Shown here one piece after another: positions 33,667-44,642 of a stretch of 64,000 bases of DNA. The first letter of the stretch is position 1. Each line of letters begins with the position of its first letter. Below the pieces are notes generated by a model that was not told the origin of the DNA, searched no databases, and saw only the letters and a program-made list of their open reading frames with translations. The DNA lies in the NCBI GenBank assembly GCA_965240325.2, contig OZ251228.1, positions 1,116,001 through 1,180,000 on the forward strand. Reading direction: 5' to 3'. The stretch is from Rebecca billardiae RCC1528. Taxonomy: Eukaryota; Protista; Haptophyta. The position numbers and the translations under genes were made by a program.

Positions 33667-36600
33667 CTACACCACATGCACTACCGCCGCCTCCGCCTGC
33701 ACGGCTTCCAGAACGCCCACGTCCTCTGCGAGCGCGCGCATCAGCAGGCGGAACGTCGGCAGGTCGGTCGCGTCCGCGTGCTCGGCGGCGAGCATCCCGC
33801 ACAGCGCGTCGCGCTGCGCCGCGTCCACGTGTGCGCACAGCGCCAGCGCATCGCGCGCCAGCTCGAGGGGCGCGACGCCGCCGCCCGCGCCGGCGCGCCC
33901 GTTGTCCACGACAAGAGCGTGCAGCGCGCCGATAGCCTCGTCGCGCACGCCCGCGTGCGCCGGATCGACGAGCGCGCGGAGCAGCGCGTCCGCAACCACG
34001 GGCCGCGCAGTCACGCACTCTGGATGGGCGCGCAGCCGACCGCGCGTCGCCTCGTCCGCGCGCACCAGCCGCTCCGCCGCCGAGCGAAACGCGGCGCGCG
34101 CGCCCGGCCGCGCGAGCGCGTGCGCGTACGCGCCGACGAGCGCGCGCACCGCGCCCGGCGTCGCCTCGAGCTCGCGCCAGCGCTCGCGCACGAGCACGTC
34201 GAGCACGCGATGGTACCGCGGCGCCGACGCGCGCCGGCTGGCGCCCGACTCGAGCCGCGCCGCGCACAGCTGCAGCGCGGCCGCCCAGTGCGCGCGCGAG
34301 CCGCCGACCATCGCGAGCAGCCGCAGCAGCAGGCGCTCGAGGGCGGCGCCGGCGCGCTCGCTGCCCGGCCCGCCTGCCGTGCGCACCGGCCGCGCGGCGT
34401 ACGCCACGAGCTCGTCGAGCAGCGGCGTGAGCGCACCCAGCGCGCCGCCCGCCGCGCCGCGCGCGCCTGCCGGCGCGGCCGCGAGCGCGAGCGCGAGACC
34501 TGCAAGCGCGCCGAGCGCACGCGCGCACGCCTCGCGCGCGGCGGGGTCAGTGGCGCGCTCGTCGACGCTCGCGTAGTGCCGGATCAGCGCGGCTGCGACG
34601 GGCAGCAGCGGCTCCAACGCGCCGTGCGCCGCGTCCACCGCCGCGCGCGCCAGCCCATGCGACGCGCGCACCAGCGCCGTGAGCGCGCGCGCCCCAGCCG
34701 CGACCTCGCGCGCCGCTGCCGCCTCGCCCGCGCCCGACGGCGGCGGCCACGCTCCCGGCGTGAGCGCGTCGGCGCGCGGCGTGCCCGCTGCGTCGAGCAG
34801 GCCGCACGCATGCCACTGGGCTGCCGCCACGCGCACGAGCACGCCGACCGCACCCGCGCCCCACTCCGCCGCGCCGTGCGCGCGGCCGGCGGCGTGCGCG
34901 GCCGCTCGGAGTGCGAACAAGCTCAGAGCGCCGCACATCGGCGCACGGCCACGAGCGGGCAGCGCGCGAACGAGTGCGTGCGCGTCGGCAGCGAGCGCGT
35001 GCACGGCCGAGCGCACGCTCGCGTGCGCCTCGCGCACGCCGTCTGCCGCCCACGCCTCGGCCGGCACCGCGCTCGCGAACGCGCGAACCAGGGCCGCGGC
35101 CGCGCCGCCGAGCGCGGCCGCGGCCGCCCGCCCGTCGGCCGACGCCGCATCCGCTGCTGCTGCGTGCGCCGCGCCCAGCGCGCCGACGATGAGCTGGGCG
35201 GCCTCGGCCTCGGCGGCGACGTCGGCGCGCGAGGCCTCAGCCACGTGCGCGAGCGGCCTCGCCAGCGCGGGCGCGAGCGCGCGCAGCAGCAGCAGCAGCC
35301 CAACGCGGGCGCACGCGCCATCGCGAGCTCGCGGCGGCGGCGGCAGCGGCGACAAGGCTCGCGCCGCGCTCAGCGCCGCGCGCGCGAGCTCCAAGGCGAG
35401 CTGGCGCCCTCCGCCCGCGCACGCATCGAGCGCGCCGACCGCCTGGCACGCCACCGGGCACAGCGCCGCAAGCGCGAGCAGCTCGTCCCCGCCCTCCGCC
35501 GCACCGCCCGCACCGAGCGGCGCGCACAGCTCAGCGACGCGCGCGCTCACAGCCGCCACGGCCGCATCCGGCCACAGGGCGAGCACGCCGCCCACAATGT
35601 CAGCCTCCGTGTGCGCGTCGACGAGCGCGGCCCGCGCTGCGGGCTCGGCTGCGTCATCCTCGTCGCTCTCGCCGCTGCTATCCACTGCGCCGATCGCCTC
35701 CGCCGCCGCGCCGCCGCCGCCACCGCCGTCGAGGTTGTCATCGTCATCGTCAGCGCCCTCATCCGCGGACGCTGCGGAGGCGCCGCTGTCATCGTCGGCG
35801 TCAGCGTCGGCGTCGGCAGGGCCCGGGCCCGCGGCAGCCTGCGCCCCACGCCGGCTGGGGGAGGGCCCGCGCAGCAGCCCGTCGGCCAGCACGCGCGCCG
35901 CCACGCGCCTCCGCTCGAGCACGTGCCGCAGCAGCTCCCCGTGGCCCGGACCGAAGGCGGCGCAGAATTCGTCACGGCTGAGTCCGAGCGGTCTCGCGCG
36001 CGTGCCCTCCTCGCGCACGCACGCGCCCAGCCCGTCGAGCAGCGTGGCCCACGCGCGGTAGCACGCGCGCGCGGCGGCGCGGGTGCCAGGGGCACACGTA
36101 AGCGCGAGCAGCGCGCCGAGCAGCGCGCCTGCCTCGTCGCTGTACGGCACTGTCGCTGCGCCGCCGATCCGAGGCAGCACGTGCGCACACATGGCCTGCG
36201 CGCACTCTGCGAGCGCGCGCGCCTCCGCCGTCGCTCCCTCGGCGCGACGCGCCTCGGCGGGTGACGCGGCCGCGCGGCGGAGCGCCTGCTCGAGGTGTGC
36301 CAGCGCCGGCACGAACAGGCTCGCCGCGTCCGCCGCGCGCACGTTGCGCTCGAAGAGCGTGCGCGCGCACGCGAGCGCGCGGGCGCGATGAGCCGCGCTC
36401 GGCGCTGCAAAGCGCGCGCACAGCGCTGGCACGAGCTGGGGCGGGACGGACTGCGCGCTGACGGGGAGCCACTGGGCGCACGTACTGAGCGTGTCGAGTG
36501 CGTCGGCCTCAACACCCACGCCACCGCCACCTCCGTCATCCGCCCCGGCCGCCGCCGCGAGCGCATCCGCCGCATGCGCAAACACGGCGGGCGCAGCAGC

Positions 36601-37152
36601 CGACAGGCCGCGCGCGAGCAGGCGGCGGCGCGAGCTGAGCACCGTGGCGCGAGAGGGGTCGAGGCTCTCGTGGACGAGCAGCTCAATCAGCCGAAGGCCA
36701 AGGGCGCGCGTCGGCGGTGAGCGCACCGCCGCGAGCAAGTCGTCGAGAAACGAAGGAGCGGCGTCCGGCCACAGCTGCCGGCCGGCGCGCACGTACACCT
36801 GGCATAGCTTGCGGTTGACGCCGGATGGCCAGGCGGCGGCGTGCGTGAAGAGGAGCTCGCGCAGCACCGTGAGCGTCTCGAGCTGCTCCGCGTGCGCCAG
36901 CCCGTGCCAGCGCGCCAGCACGAGCCGGTCGAGCACGAGCGCGCAGAACCACAGCACCAGTTGGCCCGCGGCGGCGGGCTCGCGCAGCGCGGCGACGGCG
37001 ACGGCGACGTTGGCCGGCTCGTCGCGAAAGCGCACGAGCTCGGTCTCAAGCTGCTGTCGCCGCGACGGGTCGGTCCCATCGCCCCCGTAGTACTGCGCCA
37101 GCGCGTGCTGAAGCTCGTGCAGCACGCGGCGGTGATCATGACCGTGCGCCAT
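33667..37152 (-). CDS. XPO6: Exportin-6-like karyopherin-beta (1161 aa, apparently intronless)
   Basis: Importin-beta N-terminal pattern; RKLCQVYVRAGRQLWP and VRSPPTRALGL...DPSR parallel XPO6 NKLCKVIVDIGRQDWP and IQSPVTTPLGL...CPRE; C-terminal DLPTF...LAED parallels DLPSF...LVND (recalled sequence). Confidence 0.8.
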   Translation of the reverse strand: MAHGHDHRRVLHELQHALAQYYGGDGTDPSRRQQLETELVRFRDEPANVAVAVAALREPAAAGQLVLWFCALVLDRLVLARWHGLAHAEQLETLTVLRELLFTHAAAWPSGVNRKLCQVYVRAGRQLWPDAAPSFLDDLLAAVRSPPTRALGLRLIELLVHESLDPSRATVLSSRRRLLARGLSAAAPAVFAHAADALAAAAGADDGGGGGVGVEADALDTLSTCAQWLPVSAQSVPPQLVPALCARFAAPSAAHRARALACARTLFERNVRAADAASLFVPALAHLEQALRRAAASPAEARRAEGATAEARALAECAQAMCAHVLPRIGGAATVPYSDEAGALLGALLALTCAPGTRAAARACYRAWATLLDGLGACVREEGTRARPLGLSRDEFCAAFGPGHGELLRHVLERRRVAARVLADGLLRGPSPSRRGAQAAAGPGPADADADADDDSGASAASADEGADDDDDNLDGGGGGGAAAEAIGAVDSSGESDEDDAAEPAARAALVDAHTEADIVGGVLALWPDAAVAAVSARVAELCAPLGAGGAAEGGDELLALAALCPVACQAVGALDACAGGGRQLALELARAALSAARALSPLPPPPRARDGACARVGLLLLLRALAPALARPLAHVAEASRADVAAEAEAAQLIVGALGAAHAAAADAASADGRAAAAALGGAAAALVRAFASAVPAEAWAADGVREAHASVRSAVHALAADAHALVRALPARGRAPMCGALSLFALRAAAHAAGRAHGAAEWGAGAVGVLVRVAAAQWHACGLLDAAGTPRADALTPGAWPPPSGAGEAAAAREVAAGARALTALVRASHGLARAAVDAAHGALEPLLPVAAALIRHYASVDERATDPAAREACARALGALAGLALALAAAPAGARGAAGGALGALTPLLDELVAYAARPVRTAGGPGSERAGAALERLLLRLLAMVGGSRAHWAAALQLCAARLESGASRRASAPRYHRVLDVLVRERWRELEATPGAVRALVGAYAHALARPGARAAFRSAAERLVRADEATRGRLRAHPECVTARPVVADALLRALVDPAHAGVRDEAIGALHALVVDNGRAGAGGGVAPLELARDALALCAHVDAAQRDALCGMLAAEHADATDLPTFRLLMRALAEDVGVLEAVQAEAAVVHVV

Positions 37153-37449
37153 CTCCCGGCCGCAGGTTCCGGGAGATCGTCGCCGTGCTGGCTGGTGATT
37201 TCGTCATCCGGGAAAATATTAAAATAATGTAGTGTTGCTCGCCTGGTGACCCGGACCCGCCACGCTCCCCTCCTTGGAACGACGGTTGGCCACGGGATGC
37301 AAGCGCTTCACCCCGACTGGCCGAGGTCGCCGGAGTGAAAGGGAGTCAGTCAGTGCCCGCGCCCTGCTGGCCAGTGGCGGCGCGGCGGCCCGCGGATCAG
37401 GCAGGCGGACATGATGAGGATTTTCTGACACACGCCCTCGGCGCTGCGG

Positions 37450-38290
37450 GCGCGGATATGCCCGCGGAGCCGGCACATGTGGACGGGGTGTTGTGCGAGA
37501 GCATCTGGCGCCCTCCTGCGCCGCGTGTCTTGCGCCACGCCTCTTTCGCCTCGGCTCAGCGCAACGCGCACGCGCGTGCCACCTCAAGGCCAGCCTTGCC
37601 GCGCCGCAGCGCGCGCCGCAGCGCGGCGTGGTCGGGAAGGAGCGGGCGCTGCTGCCGGGCGAGATGGCGACGTCATATTCGCACGCCATGCCGCCCCGCG
37701 ACGCCTTGACGAGCGTATCGTCGGCCCGTTTGCATGCCTCTTCGACTTGTCACGAATGGCGTGCACGGCCCTTGCGCGGGCCTTGCGGTGCCCCTTGTAG
37801 GGACGATCATAGAGACACAGAACAGCGCCAGACGGGCGCGCGGGCTATGCACGCATGAGTGTTGACCGCCGCATGGTCATGTACAAGTGCTGGATGCGAC
37901 GCGCTCCTCGCGCTGATGCTCTTTCATCATTTTCTTTGAGCTCAAGTCTGGTTTCAGGCATAACACTTGATCAGCACTCGTCAACAGCTGTGCAGATCCG
38001 TTGGCGTGCCCTTTCGCGGCGTCGCGGGGGGGCATGGCGGGCGAATATGACATCGCCATCTTGTCCAGCAGCAGCGCTCGCTCCTGCCTGACCACGCCGC
38101 GCACGGCGCGCGCGCGGTCGGCCGCGGCGCGGCAAGCCGCAAGGCTGGCCTTGAGGCGGCGCGTGCGTGCGCGTTGCCCTGAGCCGAGGCTAAAGAGGCG
38201 TGATGCAAGACGCGCGGCGTAGAAGGGCGTCAGATGCTCTCGCATAACAGCCCGTCCACACGCACCGGCTCCGCGGGCACATCCGCGCCG
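37450..38290. repeat. Degenerate inverted repeat (arms ~37450-37706 / ~38016-38290) between divergent XPO6 and WD40-kinase genes
   Basis: GATGGCGACGTCATATTCGCACGCCATGCC versus GGCATGGCGGGCGAATATGACATCGCCATC; many mismatches, no clear termini. Confidence 0.8.
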
Positions 38291-38538
38291 CCAGGTGAGC
38301 ACGCCCTCGCCGCCGCCGCCGCCGGGCGGGCGTGGGCTAATAGAAAGACGTGAACGTCCCGGCCAGGACGGTCGCCGAGCGGCGGCAGCCGCCGGACTCT
38401 TCCCTTGGCCCTCCTTGCCTCCGTTCGCCAGTGTGTCGCTTGACGGCGTCGGTGTCCACTGACCAGTGGCCAGGACCCCATTTGAACCGCGCCTCCTCGG
38501 CACCGCGCCGGCTCGCGAAAGGATCGACCTCAGGAGCG

Positions 38539-41500
38539 ATGGAGGCGTGCGTGCGCACCATCGTGGGGCACACCGAGTCGGTGTACTCGGTGGCGACCTC
38601 GAGCGCGGACGGCGGCTGCCGCTGGGCCTTGTCCGCGTCTGCCGACGAGACAGTGCGGCTGTGGGATCTGCACTCGGGCGCGTGCGTGCGCATATTCAAG
38701 GGGCACACCTCCTGGGTGAACTCGGTGGCGACCTCGAGCGCGGACGGCGGCTGCCGCTGGGCCATGTCCGCGTCTGCCGACGAGACAGTGCGGCTGTGGG
38801 ACCTGCAGTCGGGTGCGTGCACGCGCACCCTCAAGGGGCACACATGGGGGGTGAACTCGGTGGCGCTCTCGAGCGCGGACGGCGGCTGCCGCTGGGCCGT
38901 GTCCGCGTCTGCCGACAAGAGTGTGCGGCTGTGGGACCTGCAGTCTGCGGGCGCATGCGTGCGCGTCTTCCAGGGGCACACCGACTGGGTGCTCTCGGTG
39001 GCGATCTCGAGCGCGGACGGCGGCTGCCGCTGGGCCGTGTCCGCGTCTGCCGACAAGAGTGTGCGGCTGTGGGACCTGCAGTCGGGCGCGTGCTCGCGCG
39101 TTTTCGAGGAGCACATCGACCAGGTGCTCTCGGTGGCGATCTCGAGCGCGGATGGCGGCTGCCGCTGGGCCGTGTCCGCGTCTGCCGACAAGAGTGTGCG
39201 GCTGTGGGACCTGCAGTCTGCGGGCGCATGCGTGCGCGTCTTCCAGGGGCACATCAACCGGGTGCTCTCGGTGGCGATCTCGAGCGCGGATGGCGGCTGC
39301 CGCTGGGCTATGTCCGCGTCTGCCGACAACACTATGCGGCTGTGGGACCTCAAGTCGGGCGCGTGTCTGAGAACCCTCGCGGGGCACACACACTGGGTGC
39401 GCTCGGTGGCGATCTCGAGCGCGGACGGCTGCTGTCGCTGCGTAGTGTCCGCGTCTGCCGACAACACCGTGCGGCTGTGGTCGCTCGCACCGCCTTCCGA
39501 GGCGCCGGGCGCAGCTGCACCGGTGGCGCTGGTAGACGAGGTGCTCGCGCCGCGCGCTGGTGACGCGCCTCCGGGCGCTATTGATGGCCAGGCCGCGCTC
39601 GAGGCTCTCGCCGAGTTGCGGGGCGCGGCGAACACTGCGCGCGCCGCGCTCGGCGCCGAGCAGGCTGCGATCCGCGCCGCCCTCGGCCGTGGCGGCGTGG
39701 ACGAGGCGCGGCTGTCGCGGCGCGATGCGCGGCGTGCCGAGCTGCGTGCCGCGCTCGAGGCGTACGTCGACGCGCTCGTGGACTCTCATCAGCGGCTGGC
39801 GGCGCTGCGTCGCGAGGCGCGCGCGTTGCGAGCGGCGCTCGAGCGCGCGGGCGCAGAGCAGCCGCACCCGCCGGCCGCCGACGGGTCCGGTCCGGCGTTC
39901 CTGCCGCCGTCTCGCGCGCTCGATCGCGCGGTGAGCGTGATGATGCGCGCGTACGACGTCACACCGCCGCCCTCCGGCGCGGGCGCGGGCGGCGCGGCGC
40001 TCGCGGCCGTGTGGGAGGTGGCGCGCCAGGCCATCGCCCTCGCGGCGCGCGGCATGTACGCTGACGCGGACGACGGCGCATGCGCCTCGGCGTGGGCGCT
40101 CGCCATGCCCTGCCTGTGCGACGCGGCACGCGATGCCGCCGGTGATGGCGGTGATGTCGTCCGCCTGTCCGATGCGGCGCGCGCGCGCGCGGACGCGTGT
40201 GACCAGATCGCCGCGACGGCCGAGCGCACGCGCGCGCTCGTGCGCGAGGCGGAGGCGGAGGCGCGCGAGATCCGCGCGCTGCCGCCCGCCGAGCGCGCGC
40301 ACGGCGCGCACGAGCTGCGCGAGCGCGAGGAGGCGTGCAAGGTTTCGTCGCGCGCGCTGCGTCTCGCGCACCGCGCTCTTGAAGATGCTCAGGACGACGG
40401 CGGCGACGTGGACGGCGCGCAGCGCGCGCTCGTCGACGCGCAGCGGCGCGCGCAGCGCACGCAGCGCGCGCGCGAGCGCTCGCTCGACCAGCTGTACGAG
40501 CTGGCGGACGGGCCGTTCCCCGAGCTGCCCGCCATGCTGCCCGGCGTGTTCGACGGCGCAGGCGCGCTGCCCGCGCGCGCGCGACCGGCGTGGCTGCACG
40601 GGCGCACGTTCGCGCAGTACGAGCCGTGCGAGTGGCCCGACGGCGCGGCGCCCGGCCGCGCGCGGCATGATGTGCTGCTGTGCGCGTTCGCAGGCGAGCG
40701 CGTCGTCCTGAAGGTGTACCGGCTGGCGAGCGACACGGAGCGCCGGCGGCTCGAGCGCGAGGTGGAGTTTGCGCTGGCGCACGCGCACCCAAACCTCGCG
40801 CGCGTGGCCGGCGTCTTCGTCGACGAGTCGCGCGGCGCGCTCGTGCAGATGCCGCTCTACTCGGGCGGCACGCTGGTCGGCTGGCTCAAGCAAGACGAGG
40901 CGGCGGGCTTGCCGCCCGAGGCGAAGCGCTTCGGCGCGCCGGGCGCGCGTATGCTCGAGCCAGCGCACGCGCGCGTCGCGCCCGTGCGCGTGCGCGCGCT
41001 GCGGCAGCTGCTGGGCGCGCTTGCGCACCTGCACGCGCGCGGCGCGGTGCACGGCGACGTGAAGCTCGAGAACGCGTTCGTGCAGCTGCCGGGCGACGAC
41101 GCGGCCAAGCGGCCGCTCGGCGCGGCCGAGCCGTTCCGCGTGCTGCTCGGCGACTTCGACCTGACGCGCGCGGAGGAGGCGCAGCACGCTGGCGGCGTGG
41201 CGAGCGCGACGACGCGCGTGGGCGCGGGCACCGAGGGCCACATGGCGCCCGAGCTGCTCCAGCCCGGCGCGCGCGCGAGTGCGGCCTCGGACGTGTTCGC
41301 GTTTGGCGTGTGCGTGCTCCGCGCGCTCGCGGCGGACGATGAGACACGCGCCGCGCTTGTGGGCTCGCTCCAGGGCGCGCGCGCCGCGGCGGCTGCGCTG
41401 GGCGAGCCGCTCGTCATGGCTGCTCTGTCGGACGCGCCGGACGCGCGGCCGAGCGCGGCGGAGCTCGAGAGCGCGGCGCTGTGGGCGGCGAGCGACGACG

Positions 41501-42330
41501 TACTGCGCGCGGCCGAGGCTGAGCACGAGGCGGCGGCCGCGACCGCGCGCGCCGCGCTGCGCACGTGCGCGGTGTGCTTGGACGAGGAGGTGCCGCCGGA
41601 CGAGTGCGCTGAGTGCGCGGGCGGCGGGCACGCGGTGTGCTCGGTCTGCCTCTCGAGTCACGTGCGCGTGTGCGCGCAGCCCGACGGCGGCGGCGGCGCG
41701 GTGCTCGACGCGGACGGGCGCGTGCCGTGCGTCGAGGCGGGCAACGGCTGCGCACACGCGTACCTGGATGGCGAGCTCGCGCGCCACACAGCCGCAGCCG
41801 CGTTCGACGAGTATTGGCGCGCACGCGAGCAGCGAGCCGAGGCGCGCGGCGAGGAGCGCGCAGCCGCGCGCGCGCACTCCGAGGTCGTTCGCCTCGCGGC
41901 GCTCGACGTGCCCGAGCGCTTGCTCGAGCAGCGGCGCGCGCACATCATCGAGGAGATCCTCACGCTCAAGTGCCCGCGCTGCGGCACGGCGTTTGCCGAG
42001 CGGCTCGACGGCGCGCGCGGCTTCGACGGCTGCTGCGCGCTGCGCTGCGCGCGCGATCGGTGCGGCTGCCACTTCTGCGCGTACTGCCTCGCCGACTGCG
42101 GCGCCGACGCGCACCCGCACGTGCTCGGCTGCGAGCACGGCAACGGCACGCCCTTTGCGCAGCGCGGGGAGTTCGAGGCGGCGCAGCGCGCGCGCCGCGA
42201 GCGCGCGCTGCGCAGCTACCTCACCGCCGAGGCGGGCCCGGATGGCGCGGCGCGCCAAGCGATCGTCGCGTCCGTCGAGCGCGAGCTGCGCGACCTGCGC
42301 ATCGATCCCGACGCACTCGCGCGCGCGTGA
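38539..42330 (+). CDS. WD40 propeller (7 repeats) - helical/coiled region - protein kinase - RING1 and RING2/Rcat-like zinc fingers (RBR-like E3)
   Basis: ATG at 38539 (MEACVRTIVGH); seven GH...WD/WS repeats; VLK, HGDVKLEN, DFD, APE, DVFAFG; CAVC...C...H..C..C...C.....C RING; KCPRC...DGCCALRC....C..HFCAYC...H RING2-like. Confidence 0.9.
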   Translation: MEACVRTIVGHTESVYSVATSSADGGCRWALSASADETVRLWDLHSGACVRIFKGHTSWVNSVATSSADGGCRWAMSASADETVRLWDLQSGACTRTLKGHTWGVNSVALSSADGGCRWAVSASADKSVRLWDLQSAGACVRVFQGHTDWVLSVAISSADGGCRWAVSASADKSVRLWDLQSGACSRVFEEHIDQVLSVAISSADGGCRWAVSASADKSVRLWDLQSAGACVRVFQGHINRVLSVAISSADGGCRWAMSASADNTMRLWDLKSGACLRTLAGHTHWVRSVAISSADGCCRCVVSASADNTVRLWSLAPPSEAPGAAAPVALVDEVLAPRAGDAPPGAIDGQAALEALAELRGAANTARAALGAEQAAIRAALGRGGVDEARLSRRDARRAELRAALEAYVDALVDSHQRLAALRREARALRAALERAGAEQPHPPAADGSGPAFLPPSRALDRAVSVMMRAYDVTPPPSGAGAGGAALAAVWEVARQAIALAARGMYADADDGACASAWALAMPCLCDAARDAAGDGGDVVRLSDAARARADACDQIAATAERTRALVREAEAEAREIRALPPAERAHGAHELREREEACKVSSRALRLAHRALEDAQDDGGDVDGAQRALVDAQRRAQRTQRARERSLDQLYELADGPFPELPAMLPGVFDGAGALPARARPAWLHGRTFAQYEPCEWPDGAAPGRARHDVLLCAFAGERVVLKVYRLASDTERRRLEREVEFALAHAHPNLARVAGVFVDESRGALVQMPLYSGGTLVGWLKQDEAAGLPPEAKRFGAPGARMLEPAHARVAPVRVRALRQLLGALAHLHARGAVHGDVKLENAFVQLPGDDAAKRPLGAAEPFRVLLGDFDLTRAEEAQHAGGVASATTRVGAGTEGHMAPELLQPGARASAASDVFAFGVCVLRALAADDETRAALVGSLQGARAAAAALGEPLVMAALSDAPDARPSAAELESAALWAASDDVLRAAEAEHEAAAATARAALRTCAVCLDEEVPPDECAECAGGGHAVCSVCLSSHVRVCAQPDGGGGAVLDADGRVPCVEAGNGCAHAYLDGELARHTAAAAFDEYWRAREQRAEARGEERAAARAHSEVVRLAALDVPERLLEQRRAHIIEEILTLKCPRCGTAFAERLDGARGFDGCCALRCARDRCGCHFCAYCLADCGADAHPHVLGCEHGNGTPFAQRGEFEAAQRARRERALRSYLTAEAGPDGAARQAIVASVERELRDLRIDPDALARA

Positions 42331-42569
42331 GATGAGCCCGCGTATCTGGACATCAGGTACGGTACGCGGCGTCCGGAAAGCAACGACGCGAGCGCGGCGA
42401 GCAGCTCCGGCCCTCGGCGCGGGACGCGCGCGCGGCCGCCTGCGGGCTGCTAGGCGGCGCTGCGCGGCTCGGCCACGGCTGGCGCGCGCTACGCGGCATC
42501 GAGCCCACCACACGCCGGGCGCACCACGGGTGGCAGACCGCCCGCGCCCAGCGCCGCGCGGACCACCTC

Positions 42570-42880
42570 GGACCTCGACGCACGTCGCCACCCAACCGCG
42601 CGCCGTCGTGGCGCGCCGCTCCATCTCCCTGTCTCGCCGACTGCTGCGGCAAAATACACCATGACGAGCATTTCATCCCAAACCTCCTCGACGCGCGTCG
42701 CCACCCAACTGCGCATTGTCGCGGCGCGCCGCTCCATCTCCCTGTCTCGCCGACTGCGGCAAATACATCATGACTACGAGCATTCACCTCCTCGACGCGT
42801 CGCCTCCCAACCCGTCTCAACCGCTCCCAGTCCCAACCCGTCGACCGTCTCAACCGCGCATCGTCGTGGCGCGTCACGGG
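42570..42880. repeat. Degenerate ~110-bp tandem repeat (~2.5 copies)
   Basis: GGCGCGCCGCTCCATCTCCCTGTCTCGCCGACTGC occurs twice; CCTCGACGC.CGTCGCC three times. Confidence 0.8.
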
Positions 42881-43299
42881 CATCATCACGTAGCGTGCTT
42901 TATACGTGCGCGTAATTTACGCGTAGTATAATGCGCCGATCGTCTAGCTGCCGACTCGCGCCAGCAATCAGCATAGTTATATATATAGCTAGCTACGACA
43001 TGCCGCGAATCCGATTATACGATATAGCAGTAGCAGACTCTTCCGGAAGCAGCGGAAGCTAGTGAGTCAGTGTAGTAACTTAGACTTTACAGAGTCTGCC
43101 AAAACTAAAAGGCCGCGAATCCGATAGCAGCGTAGCTAAACTAGTGTAGTAACTTAGTTACAGAGTCTGCCAAAACTAAAAGCAGACTTTTAATGGCGGG
43201 CCGTTAATTTAATTGTCTGCTGAGTGCTGATGCCCGTTGACCGTTATTATTATTTCTTCGCGGTGATGACACTTGACAGCATGTCATCTAATCATCATC

Positions 43300-43401
<102 letters not shown>

Positions 43402-43565
43402 TCCGATGCAGAAGGTCCCGATTTTACAGGAGCTCCGCTGCGAGCCGGAGTATTAATGACCTAGCCGGAAAGCATACTAAATAATGGAGGTGCTAGAACG
43501 ACGACTGCTTCCTGTGGCTGTGCGTGGCGGTGCGCGCAGGACAGCGCCGGAATGCCGCATGCGAC

Positions 43566-43696
43566 TGTTGGATGGCGTCAATCACTGCTACGCCTTATTA
43601 ATCAATAAGTGTGCACCTTGACGCATATACCCATACAGTTTACTATGATTTATTAAAGTGCACACTTGGTTAAGGCGTGATTAACGCCATCCAACA
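43566..43696. mobile_element. Small hairpin MITE-like repeat TGTTGG...CCAACA; partial degenerate copy at 45135-45226
   Basis: TGTTGGATGGCGTCAATCAC...AAGTGTGCAC inverted against GTGCACACTT...GTGATTAACGCCATCCAACA; no TSD seen. Confidence 0.55.
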
Positions 43697-44642
43697 CTCA
43701 TGAAATGTAGTACTGCTCATCAGTCGCGACGACTCTAATACCTTACCAGATCATAAATGCTATTCATCATAAATGCCTCATTGCCTTGATCGGCGAGCTG
43801 TTTCAGGCTTACACTTGCGTCGCGCGGGTAATCGCCTTCACATTTCTTAAAGGGAATCTTGGGATAACCGCGAAGCTCCGAGCGCTAACGAGCCCTGCTA
43901 AAAGCTCACCGCGCGCGACAGGACGGACATCGCCTCCACGGGCTACATTGCCTCTGCAACTTGGCTGTGGCAAGCTGGGTGATCGTTCTTCGTATTCGTT
44001 TCGCCCCGAACTGAATTTGCTTCGGGCCAATCGGCGGCTGCGCTCGTGCCAGCCGTATCGCGTCGTTAACGCGACAGATTATTCGTGCGGTGAGCAGCTT
44101 CGTCGCGGGAAGCAGCTGATATGATTCCACTTGCACAGTGCACTGGTGGTAGTGATGAAGGATCAAAGTCCATTACGGCGGCAGCATGGCGGCCTGGCCG
44201 AGATGCTCGTCTGGCTCGCCATCTGCTCGCCGCAGCGCGTCGCGCCGGGTCGTGCAGCCCGCGTGCGCGCCGACCTGCAAGATGTGTGCGCTTGGTATCG
44301 GTGAGCCGCCCCGCGTCAGCACGCGTGGGCGCCTCCGACTTGCTTCAGCCGCTGCGCGCGCGCCGCGCGCGCGCGCGCCGTCCGCGCACCGTATTGCCTC
44401 GCAGCAGCCGCGCGTCCGCGCACTGCTATCTCGTAGCAGCCGCGCCACCGGTCCGCCTGCTGCGGCACCGGCCCTGGCACCCCGGCGACGACGCCATCTG
44501 CTGAGATGCGCGCCCCAGGCCGCGTCAGCTCAACAGAGAATGTTCGATTCACGATTCAGGGCAAGGGTTTGGTTTGTTATTTCAATAGCTAGCAGACCGT
44601 TGATTGCCACCCGCATTCGGCATTGGCTTTGAATAATCAATA

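Follow-up and report, generated by a model that had tools for sequence, protein, structure and literature searches.

The locus described here raises the question of whether an array of seven similar WD40 repeats in a haptophyte alga forms a diversifying recognition surface of the kind known from fungi, and to what sort of protein such a surface belongs. The array opens a long reading frame that starts with the ATG at position 38539 of a 64,000-nucleotide stretch from Rebecca billardiae RCC1528 (GenBank assembly GCA_965240325.2, contig OZ251228.1, positions 1,116,001 to 1,180,000 of the forward strand), which we call the window and whose numbering is used unless another contig is named. The initial annotation, made from the sequence alone, had described nearly identical repeats with hypervariable positions, compared them to the HET-D/HET-E proteins of Podospora anserina, which are fungal NOD-like receptors (NLRs; NOD, nucleotide-binding oligomerization domain), and proposed a non-self recognition module. 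Our analysis leads to a related but different view: on balance, the propeller is probably the ligand-binding head of a cytosolic signaling protein, belonging to a set of receptors that share an unvarying output and carry fast-diversifying surfaces.

Tandem Repeats Finder (TRF) reported a single array at 38545-39480 with a period of 135, 6.9 copies, 86% matches and a score of 1230; its top score, 1347, was obtained at a period of 273, which represents a higher-order unit of two repeats of the WD40 array. Translation from the ATG resolved the array into seven WD40 units of 44, 45, 45, 46, 45, 46 and 45 amino acids (132, 135, 135, 138, 135, 138 and 135 bp), which bears out the seven tandem repeats noted earlier. 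The units had been called 132/135-bp copies, nearly identical in DNA; their number stands, their lengths extend to 138 bp, and the near identity was overstated, with pairwise values of 77–93% for DNA (mean 84%) and 64–89% for protein (mean 74%). Ordinary WD40 repeats are hardly alignable at the DNA level. Because such repeats have just 10–20% of their residues in common (Paoletti et al., 2007; PMC1805685), the similarity of the present units nevertheless goes far beyond what chance would give. A 3-bp insertion encoding an extra Ala is shared by units 4 and 6 (within 38941-39351), and units 1 and 7, at the ends of the array, are the most diverged of the seven. The insertion and the 273-bp period suggest that a block of two blades was once duplicated or converted inside the array, and the repeat comparison as a whole indicates that all seven blades stem from one recently amplified unit.

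The protein encoded by 38539-42330 matched the Pfam WD40 domain in seven stretches (E 1.7e-46). An AlphaFold2 (AF2) model of the propeller, computed from an alignment of five paralogous propellers, had a mean predicted local distance difference test (pLDDT) score of 89.2 and a predicted template modeling (pTM) score of 0.90, and comprised 28 strands arranged as seven four-stranded blades. In the model, the N-terminal strand (residues 4–9) completes the last blade as its strand D, in the 'velcro' closure customary for propellers. Foldseek aligned the model at template modeling (TM) scores of 0.85–0.87 with LIS1, WDR5, a 7-blade designer propeller, the propeller of Thermomonospora PkwA and a Nostoc 'highly repetitive propeller'. 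The start Met occupies an identical position in all WD40-headed paralogues introduced below; the propeller is therefore the true N-terminal domain.

To locate the variation, 24 units from the nearest members of the family were aligned over 45 codon columns: seven from the gene at 38539, 15 from a paralogue on contig 1 and two from a fragmentary copy. High entropy was found at columns 10, 14, 15, 17, 36 and 38, which account for 41% of the column entropy in the gene at 38539 and for 47% in all 24 units, and picking the hypervariable columns separately for each gene gave nearly the same set. This bears out the claim that change is concentrated after the GH dipeptide and at the SAD site; the strings listed for these positions (TESVY, TSWVN, TWGVN, TDWVL, IDQVL, INRVL and THWVR after GH; ADET, ADET, ADKS, ADKS, ADKS, ADNT and ADNT at SAD) were all found in the translation. 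Beyond what the initial annotation mentioned, columns 21 and 32 and three columns of strand D (6, 8 and 9) also vary in the gene at 38539. Column 36 is Ala in 7/7 of its units and variable in the paralogues.

Faces were assigned from the DSSP elements of the AF2 model together with established WD40 topology. By this assignment all six hypervariable columns are predicted to lie on the top face, either in the D–A loop and the start of strand A or in the B–C turn, where columns 36 and 38 stand on either side of an Asp in the model; mapping thus places the variable residues in a cluster on one face, as had been anticipated. The bottom loops, which are as exposed as those at the top, are invariant (the 'SSADGGCR' A–B loop and the 'LQSG' C–D loop). 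Columns 15, 17 and 36 are what Wu et al. (2012; PMC3419727) term R1-2, R1 and D-1, the three general, peptide-binding top-face hotspots of WD40 propellers. In HET-E and HET-D, the positively selected codons 7, 9, 25 and 27 flank the conserved codons 8 and 26 (Paoletti et al., 2007; PMC1805685). Their counterparts here are columns 15/17, which flank the invariant V16, and columns 36/38, which flank the invariant D37, with a V-to-D spacing three residues longer than in HET-E because the A–B loop is longer. Entropy is enriched at these four columns in the gene at 38539 (permutation p = 0.02) and in the 24 units (p = 1e-4).

These four HET-E-homologous columns (15/17/36/38) were used as an a-priori test set for selection, and the sites were therefore not chosen by their own variability. 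Nei-Gojobori counts were taken both pooled and in phylogenetically independent nearest-neighbor pairs. The pooled ratio of nonsynonymous to synonymous rates (dN/dS) was about 2.9 at the four columns vs. 0.35 at the 39 columns that remain when all six hypervariable ones are set aside. Across 12 independent pairs, nonsynonymous and synonymous changes were distributed differently between the four sites and the rest (Fisher p = 2e-4), and the proportion of nonsynonymous differences (pN) at the four sites was 2.6 times the repeat-wide proportion of synonymous differences (pS; p = 4e-8). The five youngest pairs gave a factor of 4.7 (p = 2e-5), and three independent pairs taken solely from the gene at 38539 a factor of 2.8 (p = 0.018). 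Outside the four sites pN was 0.03–0.10. The nonsynonymous excess expected of a diversifying surface was thus recovered at 2.6–4.7 times the repeat-wide silent rate. In the five youngest pairs, 15/30 hypervariable codon cells differ (14 nonsynonymous, 1 synonymous) compared with 21/195 others (11%; p = 2e-6). Several hypervariable codons differ at all three bases (e.g., TGG>AAC) between units that are otherwise 97–99% identical, which suggests that strong selection, conversion in patches from other units, or both have been at work. These comparisons indicate a scaffold (strands, bottom loops and the D-H-S-W positions) that is nearly constant, and top-face residues (R1-2, R1, D-1, D+1 and two in the D–A loop) that appear to change faster than silent sites.

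The genome (72 Mb in 41 contigs) was scanned with the propeller as the query, which revealed three additional full-length genes with this domain architecture, on contig 1 (77–81% identity), contig 5 (64–65%) and contig 14 (44–48%, with degenerate repeats). A truncated copy of about 2.5 WD40 blades lies on the + strand of the same contig as the window, at contig positions ~1012015-1012779 and 142 kb upstream. The DNA upstream of it is 89–95% identical to 37000-38328 of the window and the 200 bp before the ATG differ; the copy may be a fragment or pseudogene and a possible repeat donor. The contig-1 paralogue (contig 1, 733551-738929, - strand) contains 15 WD40 blades in a 7+1+7 arrangement, in which the last blade and the start of the linker have been duplicated twice and the middle copy has collapsed to one blade. 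Its mean internal amino acid identity is 82%, against 74% in the gene at 38539, and some of its blade pairs are 97–99% identical outside the hypervariable codons. Judged from these repeats, concerted evolution and repeat shuffling, including duplication of a whole propeller, appear to be ongoing in that gene.

No blade-by-blade conservation of top-face residues was observed between the WD40-headed paralogues; these residues are wholly different between paralogues whose output modules are 86–89% identical. With the hypervariable codons masked, inner blades resembled those of the contig-1 paralogue equally well at the same position (0.89) and at other positions (0.89–0.90), and a positional signal was kept by the end blades only. 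The earlier claim that such domains diversify by repeat shuffling therefore appears to hold for the contig-1 paralogue, with its highly similar blade pairs and duplicated propeller; for the array at 38539, exchange within the array is weakly indicated by the 273-bp period and the insertion in units 4 and 6. For the WD40-headed family, this mode of diversification is plausible. Recent exchange of repeats between genes was also considered for the gene at 38539 and rejected as unproven, since the best masked cross-gene pairs, at 95%, do not clearly exceed the gene-level identity of about 90%.

What the propeller is attached to was established from the remainder of the frame, which would run from the closed WD40 propeller through a helical linker to an atypical Ser/Thr-type kinase and a ligase module resembling RING-between-RING (RBR) enzymes. 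The Ala/Arg/Glu-rich linker contains no Pfam domain match and no NOD ATPase. NACHT, NB-ARC, AAA_16 and other NOD ATPases were likewise absent by Pfam from the 1263-amino acid protein, both in the whole frame and in residues 317–1263, where the kinase and a weak zf-C3HC4 match were the only hits. The kinase scored 58.3 bits against a cut-off of 31.7. It retains the catalytic Lys, HGD...K..N, DFD and APE motifs and is of the non-RD (HGD) type; in the family alignment K38, H151/D153/K155/N158, D185/F186 and P217/E218 are invariant or nearly so. Its sequence matches in the Protein Data Bank (PDB) were 9gmp, IRE1 and RIPK1/3, and the kinase fold was borne out by Foldseek. A GxGxxG Gly-rich loop before the catalytic Lys was found in no member of the family alignment.

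Downstream of the kinase, a RING1-like segment matched zf-C3HC4 under the cut-off (E 0.003), and the family profile aligned it to RING1 of ARIH1 (E 0.023). A second segment with the pattern CPxC...GC.AL.C...C..FCA.C...H.H resembles Rcat (RING2): phmmer aligned it to parkin RING2 (E 0.047), and the family profile matched parkin RING2 (E 0.035), Drosophila parkin (0.051) and ariadne RING2 (0.12) in the same order relative to the RING1 match. In this finger, the Cys that follows G/N falls at the alignment position held by the catalytic Cys in parkin and ARIH1. For the in-between-RING (IBR) domain, no match was found in the protein at 38539, and IBR_1 scored 0.077 in one outside relative. The arrangement is likely an RBR-like ubiquitin-ligase module. 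Over the C-terminal 947 codons, the gene at 38539 and its contig-1 paralogue are 86% identical in amino acids, with dS 0.16, dN 0.078 and dN/dS 0.49, indicating purifying selection on the part of the protein that follows the propeller.

A second query, consisting of 576 amino acids of the kinase/zinc-finger part, identified eight tandem genes at 751–842 kb of contig 13 (listed stretch 744000-842300), whose C-terminal modules are 83–89% identical to that of the gene at 38539 and which contain no WD40. Upstream of their main exons are arrays of ~430-bp units, each with an 87-nt piece between CAG and GTGAG. We take this piece to be a ribonuclease-inhibitor-type leucine-rich repeat (LRR), a putative assignment by motif and by the known LRR consensus; Pfam gave no match on single 87-nt exons or on the putative first exon. 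Among 46 such exons, 24/28 full codons are invariant and one more carries a single substitution, the remaining variation falling at positions 1, 25 and 27 and at the intron-split codon, which are the x positions of the putative LxxLxLxx. Outside the variable codons these exons are 100% identical, the 343-nt introns are 92.6% identical, and the number of units varies from copy to copy. The family thus comprises four WD40-headed genes and a fragment together with eight genes that have putative LRR heads and the 83–89% identical C-terminus. More distant kinase/RING/Rcat paralogues were also seen on contig 17 (1970180-1972195, 1148-aa frame, 58–59% identity) and contig 10 (1438013-1439683, 1561-aa frame, 38% identity).

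Comparison with known systems shows that the repeat pattern itself is already known, from fungal NLRs, from bacterial and protist highly repetitive WD40 proteins and from brown-algal receptors. The gene at 38539 has in common with HET-E, HET-D, HET-R and the NWD (NACHT-WD40) family of P. anserina (Paoletti et al., 2007, PMC1805685; Dyrka et al., 2014, PMC4986451) highly similar tandem WD40 units, variable codon pairs around an invariant V in strand A and an invariant D in the B–C turn, a top-face location of these codons with excess nonsynonymous change, and unit arrangements that differ between paralogues. It differs in lacking NACHT and HET domains, in having an N-terminal propeller of exactly seven blades, whereas the NWD array is C-terminal behind the effector, in its unit length (45 vs. 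42 amino acids) and internal identity (74% vs. ~85% or more), and in its kinase and RBR-like output and algal rather than fungal host. The HET-E-like binding-face pattern proposed in the initial annotation is accordingly retained, and the NLR label attached to it is not.

Repeats with high internal conservation (HIC), defined by ~85% amino acid identity or more over >=100 aa (Dyrka et al., 2014; PMC4986451), have been described across all domains of life in proteins that resemble NLRs (Ament-Velasquez and Saupe, 2026; PMC13449251). A wider class was delineated by Hu et al. (2017; PMC5587647), who listed ~300 highly repetitive WD40 proteins of recent duplication, with internal identity >=0.7 and diverse hotspot sites, from prokaryotes and protists and including non-NLR proteins. 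Within that class, the WD40-kinase proteins of the PkwA type from actinobacteria, cyanobacteria and planctomycetes (PMC5587647) resemble the gene at 38539 in internal identity of at least 0.7, in a conserved scaffold with diverse hotspots and in the union of WD40 and kinase in one chain; highly repetitive WD40 proteins also supply the propeller's best database matches (40–55%), and Thermomonospora PkwA is a top structural match. The present gene is distinguished by being eukaryotic, by the order of WD40 first and kinase second, by the added helical linker and RING1/Rcat-like fingers, and by having LRR-headed sisters.

The contig-13 paralogues, for their part, recall the LRR-ROCO as well as the NB-ARC-TPR candidate receptors of Ectocarpus (Zambounis et al., 2012, PMC3341825; Teng et al., 2024, PMC11378527) in having one putative LRR per exon, near-identical exons and introns with variation at predicted binding residues only, and a tandem gene cluster with unit numbers that differ between copies. 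Unlike in Ectocarpus, a brown alga, Pfam found neither NB-ARC nor a Roc-COR GTPase in the C-terminal part common to the WD40- and LRR-headed genes; the WD40-headed gene is moreover intronless. The protein resembles the RBR ligases parkin and ARIH1 in that its RING1-like and Rcat-like Cys/His clusters follow in the same order and a Cys stands where the catalytic one is; it differs in that no IBR was detected, and the E-values are marginal. Both RBR ligases and COP1/SPA differ from it in that here all parts are in one chain and in another order. A WD40 or LRR head joined through a helical linker to a kinase and RBR-like ligase without a NOD was not found described for haptophytes in the open-access literature.

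From this combination we favor, on balance, the view given at the outset, in which the family would be a receptor repertoire with a constant signaling part and fast-diversifying binding surfaces. A ligand bound on the top face would elicit a response by phosphorylation and/or ubiquitination, not by NOD oligomerization. The ligands would be variable and plausibly biotic (viral, pathogen or conspecific non-self), and diversity would arise from point change under positive selection together with duplication and patchwise conversion between repeats. Whether the propeller serves non-self recognition, as the initial annotation proposed, is made more credible by the LRR-headed sister genes and less so by the commonness of the pattern in young WD40 arrays, and we infer such a role with corresponding reserve. 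More tentatively, haptophytes may possess NOD-independent cytosolic variable receptors with interchangeable, recently amplified WD40 and LRR heads, hypervariable at ligand contacts only, on a common helical-kinase-RBR output. Such a family might, equally tentatively, constitute an undescribed innate recognition architecture, for example against viruses of these algae, that evolves like fungal NLRs or brown-algal ROCO proteins.

Several observations weigh against this view. The internal identity of 74% is under the 85% threshold for HIC repeats (over >=100 aa) and over the 0.7 threshold for 'highly repetitive' ones. In the 12 pairs, omega > 1 was not significant against the silent sites of the same four codons (binomial p = 0.12), and the repeat-wide pS that served as the yardstick assumes a uniform silent rate, no sub-repeat mosaicism and independent sites. 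DNA identity of repeats is 84–85% within genes vs. 82% between genes, with ~90% over the rest of the two genes, and the absence of positional orthology fits either continuing homogenization or a single amplification shortly before gene duplication. On the output side, the kinase is atypical and its activity uncertain because it lacks the GxGxxG loop, and it may be inactive; the RBR-like assignment is a lead only because of its marginal E-values (0.02–0.12). Lastly, hotspots vary in young WD40 arrays generally (Hu et al., 2017; PMC5587647), so that the repeat pattern cannot by itself mark a protein as a non-self receptor.

The alternative that best withstands the evidence, which we consider possible but rather doubtful, is that the propeller is an adaptor through which endogenous substrates (degron-type peptides) reach the kinase and ligase, as do the WD40 domains of COP1/SPA, Fbw7 and DCAF proteins; on the same doubtful footing, the paralogues would have different housekeeping substrates, and their top-face differences would record past sub-functionalization without an arms race. 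The domain set of RING-type ligase, coiled coil, kinase-like domain and WD40 is, we presume, that of the COP1/SPA complex. In COP1/SPA, the WD40 top face picks what the ligase acts on, and the same would hold here. An adaptor would also agree with the purifying selection on the C-terminal module (omega 0.49), with the relatives of the kinase/RBR module in other protists, and with the fact that WD40 domains in general bind peptides at their top-face hotspots (Wu et al., 2012; PMC3419727). It agrees less well with top-face residues that outpace silent sites even between repeats 97–99% identical, with the existence of at least 12 recent paralogues, eight of them in tandem and bearing hypervariable putative LRR heads, and with the truncated and duplicated copies, since birth-and-death dynamics and binding-site hypervariability are atypical for housekeeping adaptors.

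Relaxed constraint alone, in which exposed top-face residues of a young array drift neutrally with neither adaptive diversification nor a special recognition role, appears unlikely. The ~300 recently duplicated WD40 proteins with diverse hotspots (Hu et al., 2017; PMC5587647), the lack of significance when the codons' own silent sites are the reference, and the nearly equal repeat identity within and between genes are all as drift would have it. Neutral drift does not readily explain why pN at sites chosen a priori exceeds repeat-wide pS 2.6- to 4.7-fold (p down to 4e-8), why bottom-face loops of like exposure are invariant, or why a hypervariable binding site recurs independently in the LRR heads of the sister genes. 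It is very improbable that the locus is non-functional DNA or an assembly artefact, that is, a long frame arising from 73–77% G+C or the collapse of a mis-assembled array: very long spurious frames do overlap the gene on both strands and repeat arrays are prone to assembly error, but one frame holds four domains supported by Pfam or profiles in a sensible order, omega against the paralogue is 0.49, the propeller has exactly seven blades, velcro closure and a confident predicted fold, and the units differ by 7–23% in DNA, enough for unambiguous assembly. Membership in the HET-E/NWD family of NLRs was rejected as having next to no likelihood, despite the matching repeat pattern and variable codon positions and the cyanobacterial and fungal NACHT-WD40 proteins among the closest WD40 matches (40–55% identity), because the domain scan of the entire protein turned up neither NACHT nor NB-ARC nor AAA, the array is N-terminal with a kinase and zinc fingers as output, kinase-WD40 proteins are equally among the closest matches, the host is a haptophyte alga with the neighboring gene matching best in Pavlovales sp., and an unannotated upstream NOD exon is unlikely given the Met conserved in all paralogues.

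Table 1. Features of the WD40-headed gene in the window, with the hypervariable codons of repeat 2 as an example.
Feature	Position	Strand	Evidence
Whole ORF (open reading frame), 1263 codons + stop, uninterrupted, apparently single exon	38539-42330	+	Translation, paralogue comparison
WD40 array, complete 7-bladed propeller, N-terminal domain	38539-39486	+	TRF, translation, Pfam, AF2, Foldseek
WD40 unit 1	38539-38670	+	Translation
WD40 unit 2	38671-38805	+	Translation
WD40 unit 3	38806-38940	+	Translation
WD40 unit 4	38941-39078	+	Translation
WD40 unit 5	39079-39213	+	Translation
WD40 unit 6	39214-39351	+	Translation
WD40 unit 7	39352-39486	+	Translation
Hypervariable codons, repeat 2 (present in every unit)	38698-38784	+	Entropy, pN/pS, DSSP
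Column 10, repeat 2: last residue of strand D	38698-38700	+	DSSP mapping
Columns 14-15, repeat 2: end of D–A loop; column 15 = R1-2	38710-38715	+	DSSP mapping
Column 17, repeat 2: second residue of strand A, R1	38719-38721	+	DSSP mapping
Column 36, repeat 2: D-1 of B–C turn	38776-38778	+	DSSP mapping
Column 38, repeat 2: D+1 of B–C turn	38782-38784	+	DSSP mapping
Ala/Arg/Glu-rich helical linker, ~370 aa	39487-40599	+	Helical counterpart in outside relatives
Protein kinase domain, core Pfam match	40693-41331	+	Pkinase E 1e-15
RING1-like C3HC4 zinc finger	41566-41751	+	Invariant Cys/His columns; profile match
Rcat (RING2)-like zinc finger	41971-42132	+	phmmer, family profile

Outside this genome, the helical-kinase-zinc-finger module has relatives in Chrysophaeum taylorii, in Pavlovales sp. 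and in metagenomes; they are 31–40% identical to it, and their available models show no recognizable repeat head. A protein-atlas look-up of the kinase/RBR part returned just generic kinase-plus-zinc-finger or U-box clusters. The closest database matches of the propeller (40–55% identity) are generic multi-WD40 proteins; they come from bacteria, from cyanobacteria and from fungi, and some are NACHT-linked and others kinase-linked. A word search with the WD40 domain gave thousands of generic multi-WD40 proteins at <=55% and no orthologue, a result that supports the absence of relatives weakly. In the window, a 1161-aa exportin-like gene occupies 33667-37152 on the - strand; its sole strong match, which contains an Xpo1 domain, is from Pavlovales sp. 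CCMP2436 (57% identity, E 7e-206). Between it and the WD40-headed gene, which it adjoins upstream, lies an inverted repeat of ~270 bp (84% identity; 37449-37705 and 38018-38289) that recurs upstream of the truncated copy, and a pure (TC)50 microsatellite (43304-43403) is located ~1 kb past the stop codon. The region 34000-44000 contains very long spurious frames, both antisense to the gene and out of frame with it, such as 38530-42624 (-) with 1364 aa; since 73–80% G+C yields long frames, ORF length alone is no evidence for a gene in this genome.

Highly conserved repeats with hypervariable contacts are an acknowledged hallmark of rapidly evolving receptors in fungi, bacteria and brown algae, and nearly all described cases involve NOD/STAND ATPases or ROCO GTPases. 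In the present family this signature is found on a kinase with an RBR-like ligase, and the same output is paired with two unrelated repeat folds, in a haptophyte lineage whose immune and recognition systems are essentially unknown. Should the propeller prove not to be a receptor head, the gene would still provide a clean example of a young WD40 propeller that diverges first at its binding face. If the receptor interpretation is true, binding surfaces can diversify independently of the NLR architecture, and the family described here would be a concrete set of genes through which bloom-forming algae may sense viruses or other cells.

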